Of a stretch of DNA of 64,000 nt, positions 59 through 43,139 are shown piece by piece; the stretch's first letter is position 1; each line of letters opens with the position of its first letter. The notes beneath the pieces are model-generated. The model saw nothing but the letters and a program-made list of their open reading frames with translations, was not told the DNA's origin and ran no database searches. The translations under genes and the position numbers were made by a program. The stretch spans positions 1 through 64,000 of the IMG/VR virus record IMGVR_UViG_3300037054_000148; one strand, written 5' to 3'.

Positions 59-307
59 TCATAGGTTGGGGGCCGGTTCCCAGAGGGCAATGCTCATCAC
101 CACAAAACCGGGCTTCTGTTCAAAGTCGGTTAGGTAGGTCACACGAGCATATTGGGTGTGGCCGGTGTAGCTCTCGCCATTCCACTCCCGCAGTAAGAGC
201 ATATCCCCCTTCTGAAAATTACGGTCGTTTTTGCGGATTTCAAACCGTTTCATTTCGGTGATGATCTCATCAAAAAACTGAGGGAGGGTCTTAAGTTCGT
301 GAAGCAT
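59..307 (-). CDS. DUF3850 / ASCH-PUA domain protein
   Basis: HELK..P.FF, KRFEIRKNDRNFQKGD.L.L.EW signature; ATG at 307 overlaps the TAA of the upstream small ORF, so it is preferred over the track start at 334. Confidence 0.75.
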   Translation of the reverse strand: MLHELKTLPQFFDEIITEMKRFEIRKNDRNFQKGDMLLLREWNGESYTGHTQYARVTYLTDFEQKPGFVVMSIALWEPAPNL

Positions 308-462
308 TAGGGCTCCGGCATGATGATGTAGCAACTGAGGGGGTCTGGGTTGGTCTGGTTCAATCGATTAGCCTCTCCTTGAGCCACCTCAGCCTCTTCA
401 AAAATCAGTCCCGTGGGGTGGTGGTAATCCCAATAATCGAGTCTAACTATTCGGAAGGGCAT
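307..462 (-). CDS. small hypothetical protein (51 aa)
   Basis: Read manually: MPFRIVRLDYWDYHHP...IMPEP*, GGAG RBS, stop overlaps next ATG. Confidence 0.4.
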   Translation of the reverse strand: MPFRIVRLDYWDYHHPTGLIFEEAEVAQGEANRLNQTNPDPLSCYIIMPEP

Positions 463-482
463 ATGTTCTCCAGATACAACAA

Positions 483-510
483 GGCCCCACCCTGGAAACA
501 GAGTGGGGCC
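483..510 (-). terminator. hairpin downstream of DUF2828 gene
   Basis: GGCCCCAC/GTGGGGCC inverted repeat followed by a weak U-rich tail. Confidence 0.5.
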
Positions 511-516
511 GGGGCC

Positions 517-1947
517 TTACAGGGTGATCGGCTCGTAGCGAGGTCCGTTGAGGACTTCGAGCATCATCTCCATCGGGGTCGTGGCCTGAGCCTTGATCGC
601 CTTTTCGAAGATGCTGGGGCTGCATCCGGAGACCAGATACGTGCCCTTCTCGTCCATCGTGACCGGGGTCTGGTCGTTGCGGGAACTCACGTTCCAGAAG
701 ATGATGGTCGGGAGCTTGAAGCCGGAGGCCGCGTACTTCGCCTTGATCACTTCCAGGTTGGTGTTGTTGCCCACGCAGGAGTCGAACTCCATGTCGGAGA
801 TGATGAAGATCTTGGTGGGCATCTCGGAGGCCGGGAGCTTCGCCTTGACCGCAGTTGCCAGAACCACGTTGAACACGGCCTGGAGGTCGGTGTTCATGCC
901 CCAGTTGGCCTGGGACAGGTTCTTGATCTTCTCATAGAGGGTCTGCCCCTTGAGAGCCTGGATGCTAGGAGTTCCACTGAAAGTGATGAACTTGTCGTGG
1001 AAGATCCCCTTGTTCCGCTCAGCCAGATAGATGGCGAGGGAGATGCACACGGTGATCGGAGCGACCGTTCCCATGCCACTGAACATGGAGCCCGAAACGT
1101 CCGCGACAACGAGAGCGTTGTCATCGGTGTCTGCGTAGTTCGGCAGGCACTTCCACATCGCCTCAGCGGTCTGGTCCTTCTCGTTCATGGACTTGGCGAC
1201 CAGTTCGTAGGGGTAGAGGGTGCCGGAGTTGATCTTCTCCTCCCCGCGCACAACCGCAGCCAGGAACTCGTCGTAACGAGTGCCATCGTGACGCTTGAAC
1301 GCATCCTTGTAGATCAGACCCGCACGGGATGGAATCTGGCCATAGGAGATGGTGTCCCACTGGTTCTGAGACATGAGGGTCTCGACCAGCTTGATCTTCC
1401 CACGCAGGGTGGACAGGTTCTTGCGGTACTGGACCGGAGTCCACCCCAGGGCCTTGACCCAGCGGTGTGCCAGGGAGACGGTCTCCTTGGAAGAAGTGTT
1501 GATGCTGGGCATCCACTTCGCCAGGAGGCTCACGCCATCCTCGGACCCAAGGTCCAGGTTAAGCTGCTCACGGATGACGGACACGACCTTGGGGTCGGAC
1601 ACGTACTCCACAATGTCATCCCAGCGTCCGTAGACCGGCACGTAGGACAGAATGTGATCGAACACCTCACGGAAGTTCTTGTACAGTTCACGGAGCCCCT
1701 GGCGGAAGGTCTCGCGCTCCCCCTGACCCCCACGGATGTCGCGGATGTAGAAGAGGCAGCGGATGGCCGTCAGACGGTCCTCACCGAATGCCTTCAGGAA
1801 GAGGGCAGTGTTGTCCTGGCCCCGACGAGCGGGGGCGTGGTAATAGAAGTCGAGCACACCGTCCAGCGTGGACTGATGCGTCAGCGCACCGTTCTCGGTA
1901 CGGGTGTAGTTCTGGGACTTCTGGATGGCGTTAAGTAGGTTGGACAC
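517..1947 (-). CDS. DUF2828-family Ro60/TROVE-like protein with C-terminal vWA domain
   Basis: TENGA..H.ST, RDIRGGQGER, YGRWDD and LAKWMP motifs, vWA MIDAS DVSGSM and ISDMEFD; AAGGAG RBS; strong GC3 codon bias. Confidence 0.85.
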   Translation of the reverse strand: MSNLLNAIQKSQNYTRTENGALTHQSTLDGVLDFYYHAPARRGQDNTALFLKAFGEDRLTAIRCLFYIRDIRGGQGERETFRQGLRELYKNFREVFDHILSYVPVYGRWDDIVEYVSDPKVVSVIREQLNLDLGSEDGVSLLAKWMPSINTSSKETVSLAHRWVKALGWTPVQYRKNLSTLRGKIKLVETLMSQNQWDTISYGQIPSRAGLIYKDAFKRHDGTRYDEFLAAVVRGEEKINSGTLYPYELVAKSMNEKDQTAEAMWKCLPNYADTDDNALVVADVSGSMFSGMGTVAPITVCISLAIYLAERNKGIFHDKFITFSGTPSIQALKGQTLYEKIKNLSQANWGMNTDLQAVFNVVLATAVKAKLPASEMPTKIFIISDMEFDSCVGNNTNLEVIKAKYAASGFKLPTIIFWNVSSRNDQTPVTMDEKGTYLVSGCSPSIFEKAIKAQATTPMEMMLEVLNGPRYEPITL

Positions 1948-40957: not shown

Positions 40958-40991
40958 CTGAAACCCTCACATAAGGGATTCAGAAGATGTA

Positions 40992-41504
40992 TTACCCGTT
41001 GACCAGTTTAAATTTTGATTTGAGGGCGTCAATGTCTCCGGTGATACAGAATACCCCCGTGTCTTTAAGACATTCCTGCCACGAACCCCCCTCATGAACC
41101 TCAGAATGGGTGGAATCTGGCTCCAATTCATAGTCATTTAAGTCACCAAACTTAATCATGACTATGATTGGACTATTCTCTCCCTCAGAAGCGGTCTTTG
41201 CATCAGATTTGGCCTCATCTAGGCTGGTTGTAACCCGTAATTTGGTGGTCCCAGGCTCATTCCAATCGTTCAGGGTAGTCCCATGGTACAGCGAAACGTC
41301 AGGAGCGAGGGTCTGTTTCTCCGGCCCAACTGTGTATTGTTGTGGATTCGGGCTCCCACCATTGAACCCGCCATCTGGATTGCTTCGATAGCGGAGATCT
41401 TTGGCGTTTTGGGGCTCGAAATCATGAACCTTCCCGTCAATATCCAGCCCGTAGGCTCGATGTAACAGGGAGGCGGTAAAGCTAGGGAGTCTTGACATCT
41501 TCAT
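40992..41504 (-). CDS. hypothetical protein, weak ART-like motif
   Basis: LYHGT...VTTSLDEA. Confidence 0.55.
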   Translation of the reverse strand: MKMSRLPSFTASLLHRAYGLDIDGKVHDFEPQNAKDLRYRSNPDGGFNGGSPNPQQYTVGPEKQTLAPDVSLYHGTTLNDWNEPGTTKLRVTTSLDEAKSDAKTASEGENSPIIVMIKFGDLNDYELEPDSTHSEVHEGGSWQECLKDTGVFCITGDIDALKSKFKLVNG

Positions 41505-42039
41505 CCATCTTCTTTCTGCGATCTGACCAACTAACAGTCAATTCGTGGAATTGCTCCATCAGCTTCCATCGGGTGGCGTGAATTGGGTGGATGAGGGGCA
41601 TTCCTGCCTCCGCAGGGGTCCGGTCAGCCTTCTTTTGATTGCAAGCGAGGCAAGCCGCCACGAGGTTATTGGGTGCGGCACTGCCACCCCTGGACTTAGG
41701 GATCACATGGTCAACGGTGTCGGCCTTCTTCCCACAGTATTGGCAGATGTGCTCGTCCCGCTCCAAAATACCACGGTAGCCCTTACCCAGTTTGAGCTTG
41801 GTATCCTTGATGGCCTGCACACCTGGGTAGAGGATGCAGGCAAACTCATGGATGTCCTCGATCTCGTAGAGGGCCTTGCGGGTCCAGGTTTCCAGATCGA
41901 GAGCTTCTGCCCTCTCAGTGGCCAAAGCCTTGAGAGCATGACGGCGGCTAACTGCCATCATTGGCATGAAATGCATATCGACGGCGATCACCTGATCCCC
42001 CAGAGCCTTCTTATGGAGCCTTTTACTACCACTCATCAT
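41482..42039 (-). CDS. HNH endonuclease (McrA-like)
   Basis: RD...CQYCG...TVDHVIPKSRGG...NLVAAC..CN..K. Confidence 0.9.
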   Translation of the reverse strand: MMSGSKRLHKKALGDQVIAVDMHFMPMMAVSRRHALKALATERAEALDLETWTRKALYEIEDIHEFACILYPGVQAIKDTKLKLGKGYRGILERDEHICQYCGKKADTVDHVIPKSRGGSAAPNNLVAACLACNQKKADRTPAEAGMPLIHPIHATRWKLMEQFHELTVSWSDRRKKMDEDVKTP

Positions 42040-42086
42040 GGTTGCACCTTTGTAGAAGTGTTTGGTATTCGATTTGGTGAGACGAT

Positions 42087-43139
42087 CTACTTCTCTTTCA
42101 GGAGATATTTGTTATTAATCGCCTTGAAGCTGACCGTTTCACCGTTAACAAGCGAGGTGGATTTGAAAACTAGCCCTTCCCTGATCTGAGCGTTGAGACT
42201 TGGACCTGCTCCGGCAAAAGCGAGGATTTCTTCCATGGTTGGGTAGGTCTGGAATACTCTCAGATCCTCATGGATGACTGGAACAGAGTGGAGGTGCTCT
42301 CCCTTGGGGAGAAGAACTTCGAGGGCCTGGAGGACATCCTGACGCTCCTGGCGGGTCATATAGCGATGAGCATCAATGTCCCAGATATCGAAGACAAAGA
42401 GTTCCTGACCCTTGAGTTTTTCGTTATTTCCTTGGATTCCCTCTCCGATCAGTTCCCCCTGGATGGCGATGTTGAGCCCCAGGTATTTCAGAAGTTCAAC
42501 GAGGTTCAGGCGGTTGATGATCCTCCAGAAGGAGTTGTTCTGATCCTCTTTGAGGTCCAGATTCCGGCTGCAAACTCCGGTATCTCCATTCCGATGGTAG
42601 ACGGTCATGCTCGAACCGTCAAGTTTGACCGTAGTTTCGAAGCCCAGATCCCTGTGCTCCTCGAAGAACTCAGAGAGGTTCTGGATCCGCTCTTGATCGG
42701 TTTTGCGAATGAAGCCAGGAAACATGCCCTTGACCTGACCAGCAAGGCAAGCGGGGATTGGGGGCTCGTATTTAAGGACACCCAATTGCTCGGTGACATC
42801 TGCCCCTTCGTCCATGCTGTGAATCTTATTGTTGGCCAGCACGTAGAGGGGAAGAATGAGCCCCTGACTAACCTGTCCACGCAATTTGACTGTGCGGAGC
42901 CGTTCACCACGAACCCCTTCATACTCACGGGGCTCCTGTCCTTCTTTGGTGAGGAAGGGAGCGAGTGCAGTTGGCACCCATGAATCGATTTCCAAATATA
43001 CGATGGGGTCGCCAACACTGAACTCTCCCTTGCCGACTACAACTTTCCACCCACCTACGGTGGCAACTTCGATTTTGTCGGCCCCTTCGATAGGGTCAAT
43101 GCTGAGGATGTGTCTGACACTGGCTAGTTTGCGTTCCAT
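42087..43139 (-). CDS. ATP-dependent RNA ligase, DRB0094 family
   Basis: RKLASV..I..I.PI.GAD.IE N-terminal domain, KTDQER, KLDGSS, EGLVFK, SFKAINN.YL. Confidence 0.92.
   Translation of the reverse strand: MERKLASVRHILSIDPIEGADKIEVATVGGWKVVVGKGEFSVGDPIVYLEIDSWVPTALAPFLTKEGQEPREYEGVRGERLRTVKLRGQVSQGLILPLYVLANNKIHSMDEGADVTEQLGVLKYEPPIPACLAGQVKGMFPGFIRKTDQERIQNLSEFFEEHRDLGFETTVKLDGSSMTVYHRNGDTGVCSRNLDLKEDQNNSFWRIINRLNLVELLKYLGLNIAIQGELIGEGIQGNNEKLKGQELFVFDIWDIDAHRYMTRQERQDVLQALEVLLPKGEHLHSVPVIHEDLRVFQTYPTMEEILAFAGAGPSLNAQIREGLVFKSTSLVNGETVSFKAINNKYLLKEK

Follow-up and report, generated by a model that had tools for sequence, protein, structure and literature searches.

Does the first part of an uncultured jumbo-phage genome encode a complete toolkit for healing and sealing broken RNA? 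A preliminary description of the first 64,000 nucleotides (hereafter the window) of the IMG/VR virus record IMGVR_UViG_3300037054_000148 proposed that it does, listing two 2H proteins, a cyclic-phosphate-type receiver, a P-loop kinase, three metallophosphoesterases, a HAD hydrolase, an RNA ligase and several RNA-binding-type proteins, partly behind a common promoter. We are inclined, if only slightly, to read these genes as a loose modular set for dealing with damage to tRNA and other RNA, and not as one operon or a single pathway. An RNA-damage theme is plausible, with candidates for cyclic-phosphate opening, 5' phosphorylation and sealing beside 15 tRNA genes and a tmRNA gene. In favour of this reading we counted a compact cluster of repair-type genes in an independent lineage, the adjacency of CCA-adding enzymes to one of the 2H proteins (2H-A), the shared promoter, the proximity of tRNA genes, and an Rnl1-type ligase by a second tRNA island. 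The family and fold assignments, the sharing of promoters and the conservation of neighbourhoods were computed; each enzymatic step we infer from the chemistry of the respective family.

The record spans 313,597 bp and is 100% complete according to CheckV. In a nucleotide search against 50,697 phage records the sole match was a 50-nt tRNA stretch, and therefore the phage has no close cultured relative at the nucleotide level. Near-identical DNA comes mainly from peat metagenomes and, in a few runs, from freshwater and marine samples; at least 13 studies are represented in total. The minus strand of the window carries genes from position 59 to about 54,900.

2H phosphoesterases and the cREC-type receiver

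Related loci, numbered with an L below, were taken from a survey of 44 loci with a 2H-A homologue, which group into 23 lineages at a threshold of 70% identity; the flanks were searched over 10 kb in both directions with iterated profiles of the window proteins. The region that encodes the two 2H proteins and the receiver contains the following features.

3528-3553 (-): terminator-like hairpin closing the cREC/2H-A/orf3572 unit, an 11-pair stem followed by a T run (consensus scan)
3572-3880 (-): orf3572, 102 aa, third gene of the unit, conserved after 2H-A in L012, L013 and L017-L019
3983-4390 (-): 2H-A, 135 aa, 2H phosphoesterase of the "Swiss-army-knife" (SAK) type
4387-4743 (-): cREC-type receiver-domain protein, 118 aa, predicted cyclic-phosphate processing enzyme
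4745-4792 (-): cREC promoter TAGACA-N18-TATAAT with 11/12 consensus matches, embedded in a perfect 16-bp hairpin
4794-5117 (-): orf4794, 107 aa, between 2H-B and cREC/2H-A, its position conserved in L017-L019
5142-5534 (-): 2H-B, 130 aa, minimal CNPase-like 2H phosphoesterase

The motifs of 2H-A, together with the fold of its predicted model, confirm that it is a member of the 2H phosphoesterase superfamily. Among 24 homologues His-50 and His-125 are invariant, position 52 is Thr or Ser, and Thr-127 is at least 90% conserved, which places one HxT/S motif in each half of the protein. 2H-A itself has no Pfam match, but 15 of the 24 homologues match Pfam 2H-SAK (PF22547) at a permissive E ≤ 1 (best 1.8e-5), eight match 2_5_RNA_ligase2, and one carries a precomputed PF22547 match. 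The structure model has a pLDDT of 93.9. Foldseek returned nothing significant from the PDB for this model and an exhaustive aligner was needed: in a search of 48,161 PDB chains the top 21 matches were all 2H enzymes, with Z-scores of 3.9-6.6. Matches in BFVD comprised SAK-type 2H proteins and cyclic phosphodiesterase-like phage proteins, and Acb1 entries as well. Sequence and profile searches of the PDB with both 2H families gave nothing meaningful.

For 2H-B the structural evidence points to a particular branch. The motifs His-35/Thr-37 and His-90/Thr-92 are invariant among 21 homologues, and 16 of these weakly match the fungal tRNA-ligase cyclic phosphodiesterase (CPD) family (Pfam tRNA_lig_CPD, best 0.0094); 2H-B itself matches no Pfam family. 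Its model (pLDDT 93.2) superposes on the catalytic domain of CNPase with a Z-score of 11.6 and a root-mean-square deviation of 2.9 Å over 129 of 130 residues in the exhaustive alignment, and the next 2H folds follow well below at Z 5.8-7.0. The top Foldseek matches are likewise all 2H proteins, with CNPase and the KIN-CPD structure of Trl1 at a probability of 1.0. Motifs and model fold together thus confirm 2H-B as a predicted member of the CNPase/Trl1-CPD branch of the superfamily. When homologues of both 2H families were sought in cultured phages, jumbo phages accounted for 14 of the 15 distinct genomes matched; these homologues are annotated as hypothetical, with a single exception labelled "RNA ligase". 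The neighbouring orf4794 has no family match in Pfam or PHROG.

The protein encoded at 4387-4743 is, by its sequence, a cREC-type receiver. It is the only match in the genome to Pfam cREC_REC (PF20274), at 2.9e-4 and 21.9 bits, which misses the cut-off of 27; its homologues carry merely "faint" precomputed matches to the same family. In an alignment of six sequences Asp-7, Asp-8, Asp-49 and Asp-51 (the latter two in a D49-N-D51 motif) and an H85-S-A-N motif are invariant, and the acidic pocket is of the receiver type, with paired Asp residues after strand 1 and an Asp after strand 3. In the ESM Atlas the 30 named neighbours, at a score of 0.90, are without exception cREC_REC clusters, 111-120 aa long and for the most part viral. 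Hydrolysis of cyclic phosphates by cREC is uncharacterised in the literature (PMC9503650), and the family has been proposed to process cyclic ADP-ribose derivatives (PMC7824862, PMC9503650).

The start codon of 2H-A overlaps the stop codon of cREC by 4 nt. The two genes form a three-gene unit with orf3572, which has no Pfam or PHROG match; the unit is bounded by a promoter at 4790-4761 and the terminator-like hairpin at 3553-3528. L012, L013, L014 and L017 share the cREC-2H-A pair with the window, and across the 44 loci cREC is restricted to the lineage of the window itself, where it is a presence/absence polymorphism (present in the window and in these four loci). Short contigs at least 99% identical to the window, from four metatranscriptome studies of peat and permafrost, map to 2H-A, cREC and orf4794 (3900-5074), and none of them lies within 5118-6500. 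These contigs are compatible with expression of the three genes.

Kinase, ligases and RNA-binding proteins

Candidates for the remaining steps of RNA repair are dispersed over the window, and two of them lie elsewhere in the genome.

19805-20230 (-): stand-alone polynucleotide-kinase-like P-loop kinase, 141 aa
21006-21641 (-): metallophosphoesterase 1 (MPE1), 211 aa, Metallophos 5.6e-10, phrog_1649
23992-24600 (-): metallophosphoesterase 2 (MPE2), 202 aa, DxH...GD...GNHD motifs, phrog_547 4.2e-43
25512-26741 (-): protein with an NTase-like N-terminus and a SpoT/RelA-type HD hydrolase domain, 409 aa, HD_4 8.3e-18, spoT_relA 7.3e-23, weak DUF6036
27842-28975 (-): metallophosphoesterase 3 (MPE3), 377 aa, weak Metallophos, GNHE motif, phrog_20266 1.9e-68
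31988-32914 (-): HAD hydrolase, 308 aa, Pfam HAD 2.6e-6, DFDKT motif
42087-43139 (-): Rnl5-type (NgrRnl/DraRnl-like) ATP-dependent RNA ligase, 350 aa
194,892-196,055 of the genome (+), outside the window: T4 RnlA-family (Rnl1-type) ligase with an intact KxDG motif
297,709-304,284 of the genome (+), outside the window: polyvalent protein, 2191 aa, with the only CCA-adding domain of the genome

The kinase is the only AAA_33 protein of the genome (Pfam 7.3e-17) and is most similar to the kinase domains of Pnkp. It matches phrog_505, "polynucleotide kinase", at 7e-11, with the alignments to phrog_505 and phrog_2071 confined to the N-terminal half of each. Among NCBIfam profiles it matches bacterial Pnkp (2.5e-7, positions 10-119) and PNK-3'Pase (4e-4), and among PDB entries the CthPnkp kinase (1.7e-3) and T4 Pnk (4.3e-3). 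Its sequence has the Walker A motif GPSGCGKS and shows S-A-D and D-N-T-N motifs that we take to be the equivalents of the Pnk catalytic motifs. Unlike in T4, bacterial and mammalian Pnkp, no 3'-phosphatase domain is fused to the 141-aa protein.

The phosphoesterases are less uniform. MPE3 also weakly matches the PHROG annotation "DNA repair exonuclease". The HAD protein has no PHROG match and only weak NCBIfam matches to HAD-IB, SerB and MtnX, and looks like a HAD-IB-like small-molecule phosphatase. Both of these proteins probably stand outside the RNA-repair set. The NTase-HD protein at 25512-26741, which was not among the parts named in the preliminary description, may act as a hydrolase of alarmones or on RNA ends. 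Near 2H-A it has matches in L012/L013 and in the L020 group; in a lineage other than that of the window, an 844-aa ART-PolyVal protein that shares part of the NTase-HD sequence adjoins 2H-A.

The ligase of the window matches the PHA02142 OB domain (8.5e-27) and RNA_ligase (8.9e-26) of Pfam, both above the cut-off, as well as phrog_968 (2.3e-90). It aligns over its full length and colinearly with the Naegleria gruberi RNA ligase NgrRnl (5cot, E 1.5e-87), including the KLDG motif. Because of this full-length match, the N-terminal OB domain and KLDG, we assign it to the DRB0094/Rnl5 type. Rnl5 enzymes seal 3'-OH/5'-PO4 nicks in duplex RNA and not breaks in anticodon loops, and therefore the window ligase is no obvious stand-in for T4 Rnl1. 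The Rnl1-type ligase lies 5.4 kb upstream of a second tRNA island. The 2191-aa polyvalent protein, which is probably injected, combines a CCA-adding/poly(A) polymerase head with an RNA-binding domain, an ART-PolyVal ADP-ribosyltransferase domain and DUF7178.

RNA-binding-type proteins and a tRNA island complete the set.

59-334 (-): ASCH/DUF3850 small RNA-binding-type protein, 91 aa, Pfam DUF3850 2.4e-24 and ASCH 1.6e-4
517-1947 (-): DUF2828 + DUF7788 protein, 476 aa, Pfam 5.5e-50 and 1.2e-32
2759-3550 (-): second vWA protein, 263 aa, MIDAS motif DRSGS, phrog_7371 4.4e-65
9368-17456 (-): tRNA island, 15 tRNA genes (ARAGORN) and the tmRNA gene, with HNH endonuclease genes interspersed
11526-11929 (-): tmRNA gene, Rfam tmRNA 95.9 bits

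PHROG labels the products of 59-334 (phrog_986, 5.6e-33) and 517-1947 (phrog_850, 8.5e-145) as "RNA-binding protein". The latter consists of a helical N-terminal part and a vWA domain with the MIDAS motif DVSGS. Pfam TROVE had no match in the genome at E ≤ 1, though control genomes were detected, and a single-sequence search of the PDB with the DUF2828 protein returned nothing; yet the profile of its family finds a TROVE-domain protein as the best PDB match (9l5y/9kop, E 5e-4) and aligns colinearly with Rsr of D. radiodurans (2nvo, E 0.14), including the DxSGS motif. The protein is therefore "Ro60-like" at most in the sense of a distant kinship. At the Rfam gathering threshold the window contains tRNAs and the tmRNA and no Y RNA, and a literature search for DUF2828 turned up unrelated plant papers only. 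The family profile of the second vWA protein matches integrin I-domains (best E 3.8e-4).

The inventory of parts in the preliminary description thus stands, with every named component present. Both 2H proteins combine conserved HxT/S motifs and confident models with top structural matches that are only 2H folds; the receiver keeps its acidic residues and has only cREC_REC proteins as named Atlas neighbours; the P-loop kinase resembles Pnkp kinases, and the three metallophosphoesterases, the HAD-IB-like hydrolase, the DRB0094-type ligase, the ASCH protein and the second vWA protein are all recognisable. The Ro60-like protein has a vWA domain with a MIDAS motif and a probable distant kinship with TROVE, while the Pfam TROVE model does not match it.

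In total, 49 tRNA genes and a single tmRNA gene were counted in the genome. A tRNA-Lys(UUU) gene is among them, and the second island, outside the window at 201,446-214,276, has 29 tRNA genes. An additional 98-nt tRNA-like element at 14156-14253 (-) scores 44.8 bits with Rfam but is not called by ARAGORN, and T-arm-like repeats at 8007-8041 and 17630-17664 fall outside the called tRNAs; all of these may be unusual or decayed tRNA genes. Outside the window, at 223,627-223,700 (+) of the genome, lies a tRNA with a CUA anticodon (labelled Pyl by ARAGORN) that is a possible amber suppressor. Because the open reading frames of the window read normally under table 11, no recoding was assumed. The island also contains a gene for a small chemoreceptor zinc-binding (CZB) domain protein (10900-11256, -).

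Six HNH endonuclease genes were found in the window, at 7593-8024 (-), 7931-8641 (-), 8783-9319 (-), 9605-10279 (+), 41482-42039 (-) and 48035-48760 (-). The tRNA island or its border holds four of these probable homing elements, and another follows directly downstream of the Rnl5 ligase gene.

Shared promoter, gene neighbourhoods and rival readings

A promoter of the type TA[TG][AGT][CT]A-N16-19-GTATA[AC]T (form TATACA-N17-GTATAAT) occurs at 17 distinct sites of the genome, compared to 0-3 in shuffled sequences and about one by chance. Ten sites are in the window, nine of which have the minus-strand orientation. The cREC start codon follows 17 nt after the end of one site, the kinase start codon about 16-17 nt after another that ends at 20247, and the ATG of MPE1 6 nt after a third. 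A further site ends at 43337, roughly 200 nt before the Rnl5 ligase gene. Upstream of the tRNA/tmRNA island a site is found at a distance of about 1.5 kb, with its -10 element ending at 18963, and outside the window a further one lies 2.7 kb upstream of the Rnl1-type ligase. The earlier suggestion that several parts follow the same promoter is therefore correct.

The hairpin at 4745-4792 pairs the promoter spacer with the ribosome-binding site of cREC (-25.2 kcal/mol, z -7.7). At many sites of this type the spacer is complementary to the transcribed leader and the ribosome-binding site, with arm sequences that differ between sites; besides cREC this applies to 6425, 18963, 46782 and 47564 in the window and to 187288, 192112, 231947 and 313121 in the genome. 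The mean hairpin z over the 17 promoter sites is -1.4. Such a hairpin could hide the ribosome-binding site in read-through transcripts and not in transcripts that begin at the promoter itself.

The neighbourhood survey gives the set a more compact counterpart. In the independent lineage L020, with 57% identity at 2H-A, a stretch of about 11 kb encodes, all on the same strand, 2H-A, the Pnk-like kinase, a CCA-adding enzyme, MPE1, MPE2, a DUF3850 protein and a relative of the NTase-HD protein; the MPE1 homologue lies within 3 kb of 2H-A, kinase and CCA enzyme. In two further lineages a CCA-adding enzyme is encoded immediately upstream of 2H-A, and one of these was confirmed against solved CCA enzymes (E 2e-25). 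In Klebsiella phage K64-1 a CCA-adding enzyme lies 1.6 kb from the 2H-A homologue, beside nudix and macro genes. tRNA genes occur within 10 kb of 2H-A in 12 of the 23 lineages, an enrichment that is indicative only. Four lineages have the DUF2828 protein and the second vWA protein alongside 2H-A, and their co-occurrence is seen in L046, L056 and L057. Across the survey, 2H-A is repeatedly found close to tRNA genes, CCA-adding enzymes and the TROVE-like/vWA pair. That the tRNA island split a once-contiguous repair operon is not claimed; L012 and L013 share the position of the island, and such a split would at best be an old event.

How could such a modular set act? Metal-independent RNases of the host would leave 2',3'-cyclic phosphate and 5'-OH ends. 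2H-B and 2H-A would open the cyclic phosphate, and the co-transcribed cREC perhaps likewise; a calcineurin-type phosphoesterase, for which MPE1 and MPE2 are candidates, would strip the remaining phosphomonoester, and the stand-alone Pnk-like kinase would phosphorylate the 5'-OH. Sealing would fall to the Rnl5 ligase for nicks in base-paired RNA and to the Rnl1-type ligase at 194.9 kb for loops. Where the 3' end of a tRNA is damaged, the CCA-adding domain of the 2191-aa polyvalent protein would rebuild it. In parallel, phage tRNAs would replace lost tRNAs and the tmRNA would rescue stalled ribosomes, with the TROVE-like/vWA pair and the ASCH protein as putative RNA-binding accessories. Through the host-type promoter family, the tRNA island would be switched on together with the cREC-2H-A operon and the genes for the kinase, the Rnl5 ligase and one metallophosphoesterase.

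A number of observations weigh against this reading. The enzyme activities of all proteins discussed here are predicted. For 2H-A, Acb1, a phage cyclic-nucleotide phosphodiesterase and viral 2'-5' phosphodiesterases score level with RNA-end enzymes, so that the substrate cannot be read from the fold. cREC falls below its Pfam cut-off and is absent from L018/L019, which are 87% identical and in which orf4794 directly precedes 2H-A, and a complex prediction for cREC and 2H-A gave 0.00, which speaks neither for nor against binding. The contigs from RNA libraries may be carry-over of DNA. No RNA ligase was found within 10 kb of 2H-A in any of the 44 loci. 2H enzymes of the CNPase/Trl1 type leave a 2'-phosphate, and neither Tpt1/KptA nor a sirtuin was found in the genome. 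Large phages often encode metallophosphoesterases and HAD enzymes for other reasons, and for HAD and MPE3 no RNA link or RNA-related context was seen. Other sites of the shared promoter type precede a helix-turn-helix gene and unrelated genes, and because of these the promoter may mark only a temporal class.

Could one or both 2H proteins, and cREC, destroy signals or by-products of host immunity instead of RNA ends, as part of an NAD+/ADP-ribose conflict network? We regard this as possible but unlikely. Candidate substrates would be cyclic oligonucleotides (an Acb1-like activity against CBASS or type III CRISPR), cyclic ADP-ribose isomers, 2'-5' oligoadenylate-like signals and ADP-ribose 1''-2'' cyclic phosphate. 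The proposed role of cREC in the processing of cyclic ADP-ribose derivatives (PMC7824862, PMC9503650) fits, as do the Acb1 entries among the BFVD matches of 2H-A and the structural ties of its model to Acb1 (7t27, Z 5.6), MHV ns2 (Z 5.6), the phosphodiesterase of Burkholderia phage BCSR5 (Z 4.9) and the penguinpox cGAMP phosphodiesterase (Z 4.7). However, the likeness to Acb1 is at the general 2H level only, also for 2H-B (Z 6.5), and neither family profile detects Acb1 or another solved 2H protein by sequence, with no Acb1 chain in the PDB matched even at E ≤ 10. For 2H-B, Acb1 and the BCSR5 phosphodiesterase (Z 6.7) are second-tier matches; CNPase stands out structurally, fitting far better (Z 11.6) than any phosphodiesterase of signalling molecules, and this weakens the anti-signalling explanation for 2H-B. 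The genomic context points both ways. 2H-A adjoins an ART-PolyVal protein in one lineage and lies near nudix and macro genes in phage K64-1, but its recurrent neighbours are tRNA genes, CCA-adding enzymes and the Pnk-like kinase, and neither Nudix, macro-linked sirtuin nor KptA was found in the genome.

That there is no pathway at all, and that these are coincidental early accessory genes of a 300-kb phage with only a temporal promoter class in common, we consider rather improbable. The parts are scattered over 43 kb amid a TPM/LemA pair, proteasome-like and collagen-like proteins, helicases and HNH genes, the promoter type precedes unrelated genes too, and cREC is dispensable in close relatives. 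Against coincidence stand the compact clustering of 2H-A, kinase, two metallophosphoesterases and CCA enzyme in another lineage, the CCA enzyme directly adjoining 2H-A in two more, the presence of two RNA ligases, 49 tRNAs and a tmRNA in one genome, and the report in the literature that these families co-occur phyletically among jumbo phages (PMC7824862). For HAD and MPE3, which lack an RNA-related context and have no homologue near 2H-A in any of the 44 loci, the coincidence reading likely holds. A further, tentative possibility is that 2H-A, with cREC where present, takes part in a ligase-independent repair of tRNA 3' ends. A host toxin would clip the CCA end or acceptor stem and leave a 2',3'-cyclic phosphate, which 2H-A would clear for the phage CCA enzyme to rebuild the end. 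This route fits because the partners of 2H-A are CCA enzymes, tRNA islands and the TROVE-like/vWA pair, and never a ligase.

The modular set that we favour is narrower than what was initially proposed. The window alone is not a complete kit, because both the Rnl1-type ligase and the sole CCA-adding domain are encoded elsewhere in the genome, and six-frame hidden Markov model searches, from which very divergent members could escape, found no RtcB, KptA/Tpt1, sirtuin (SIR2), Nudix or SmpB in the genome. Speaking of one toolkit also overstates the case, given that HAD and MPE3 are unlinked, cREC is missing in close relatives and no ligase was seen near 2H-A.

Other features and relation to described systems

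Several genes of the window have no link to the subjects above. Inteins with LAGLIDADG homing endonuclease domains occur in a DEAD_2/Helicase_C_2 helicase and in the ribonucleotide reductase large subunit (35509-38148, - and 48753-52463, -, respectively). A TPM-phosphatase/LemA gene pair lies at 22174-23486 (-), a proteasome-subunit-like protein is encoded at 27269-27826 (-), and a collagen-repeat protein of 716 aa at 38807-40957 (-).

The comparison with T4, where Pnkp and Rnl1 repair tRNA-Lys cut by PrrC, was the model of the preliminary description, but within the window it relied on the wrong ligase, namely the nick-sealing Rnl5. Across the whole genome there are candidates for all three parts of the T4-type set: kinase, 3'-end phosphatase/cyclic phosphodiesterase, and Rnl1-type ligase. 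Like T4, the phage encodes a Pnk-like 5' kinase, an RnlA-family ligase and a tRNA-Lys(UUU). In T4 Pnkp, however, a HAD 3'-phosphatase is fused to the kinase, whereas here the kinase is a stand-alone domain, the Rnl1-type ligase is 175 kb away, and 3' healing would fall to separate 2H, cREC or metallophosphoesterase proteins.

The window ligase shares with NgrRnl and DraRnl (DRB0094) the N-terminal OB domain and the C-terminal nucleotidyltransferase domain with the KLDG lysine motif. 2H-B superposes on the CNPase catalytic domain and matches the Trl1 KIN-CPD structure, but with its 130 aa it reaches only about 60% of that domain's size and is fused to neither a kinase nor a ligase; for the Tpt1 step that follows CPD chemistry in fungi and plants no counterpart was found in the phage genome. 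The protein encoded at 517-1947 resembles Ro60/Rsr in size, in the helical N-terminal part and in the C-terminal vWA domain with MIDAS. It differs in its DUF2828/DUF7788 composition, in the unmatched Pfam TROVE and lack of an Rfam Y RNA, and in being paired with a stand-alone vWA protein.

The RNA repair repertoire of jumbo phages has already been described by Iyer et al. 2021 (PMC7824862), and an extension to NAD/ADP-ribose by Iyer et al. 2022 (PMC9503650). The published repertoire comprises 2H, cREC, polynucleotide kinase, calcineurin-like and HAD phosphatases, Rnl ligases, a CCA enzyme, a TROVE protein, tRNAs and ribosome rescue (PMC7824862). The same families co-occur here, and the logic is the same: cyclic-phosphate ends are healed, 5' ends phosphorylated, and the RNA sealed or rebuilt. 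The "layered counter-defence" put forward for this locus repeats what has already been published as a synthesis for jumbo phages (PMC7824862) and is no novel inference; the locus is an uncultured peat example of a described architecture. There are differences in detail. Published cREC neighbourhoods are linked to ligases, Nudix, sirtuin and MazG, whereas here cREC accompanies a SAK-type 2H protein and the unassigned 102-aa protein, and the published account omits the Rnl5-like family, to which the window ligase belongs, from the major phage ligase types.

Because the architecture has already been described and the addition is an environmental example from peat, the surprise for specialists is modest. 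The local particulars stand out: the cREC/2H-A/orf3572 unit, the 130-aa CNPase-like enzyme, and an Rnl5 + Rnl1 pair without Tpt1/KptA or sirtuin. The unit with its own promoter and terminator, the CNPase-like enzyme, the stand-alone kinase and the two ligases form a compact test set. Their substrates would show whether cREC represents a novel cyclic phosphodiesterase class, and whether the role of phage 2H proteins lies in tRNA repair or in anti-signalling.

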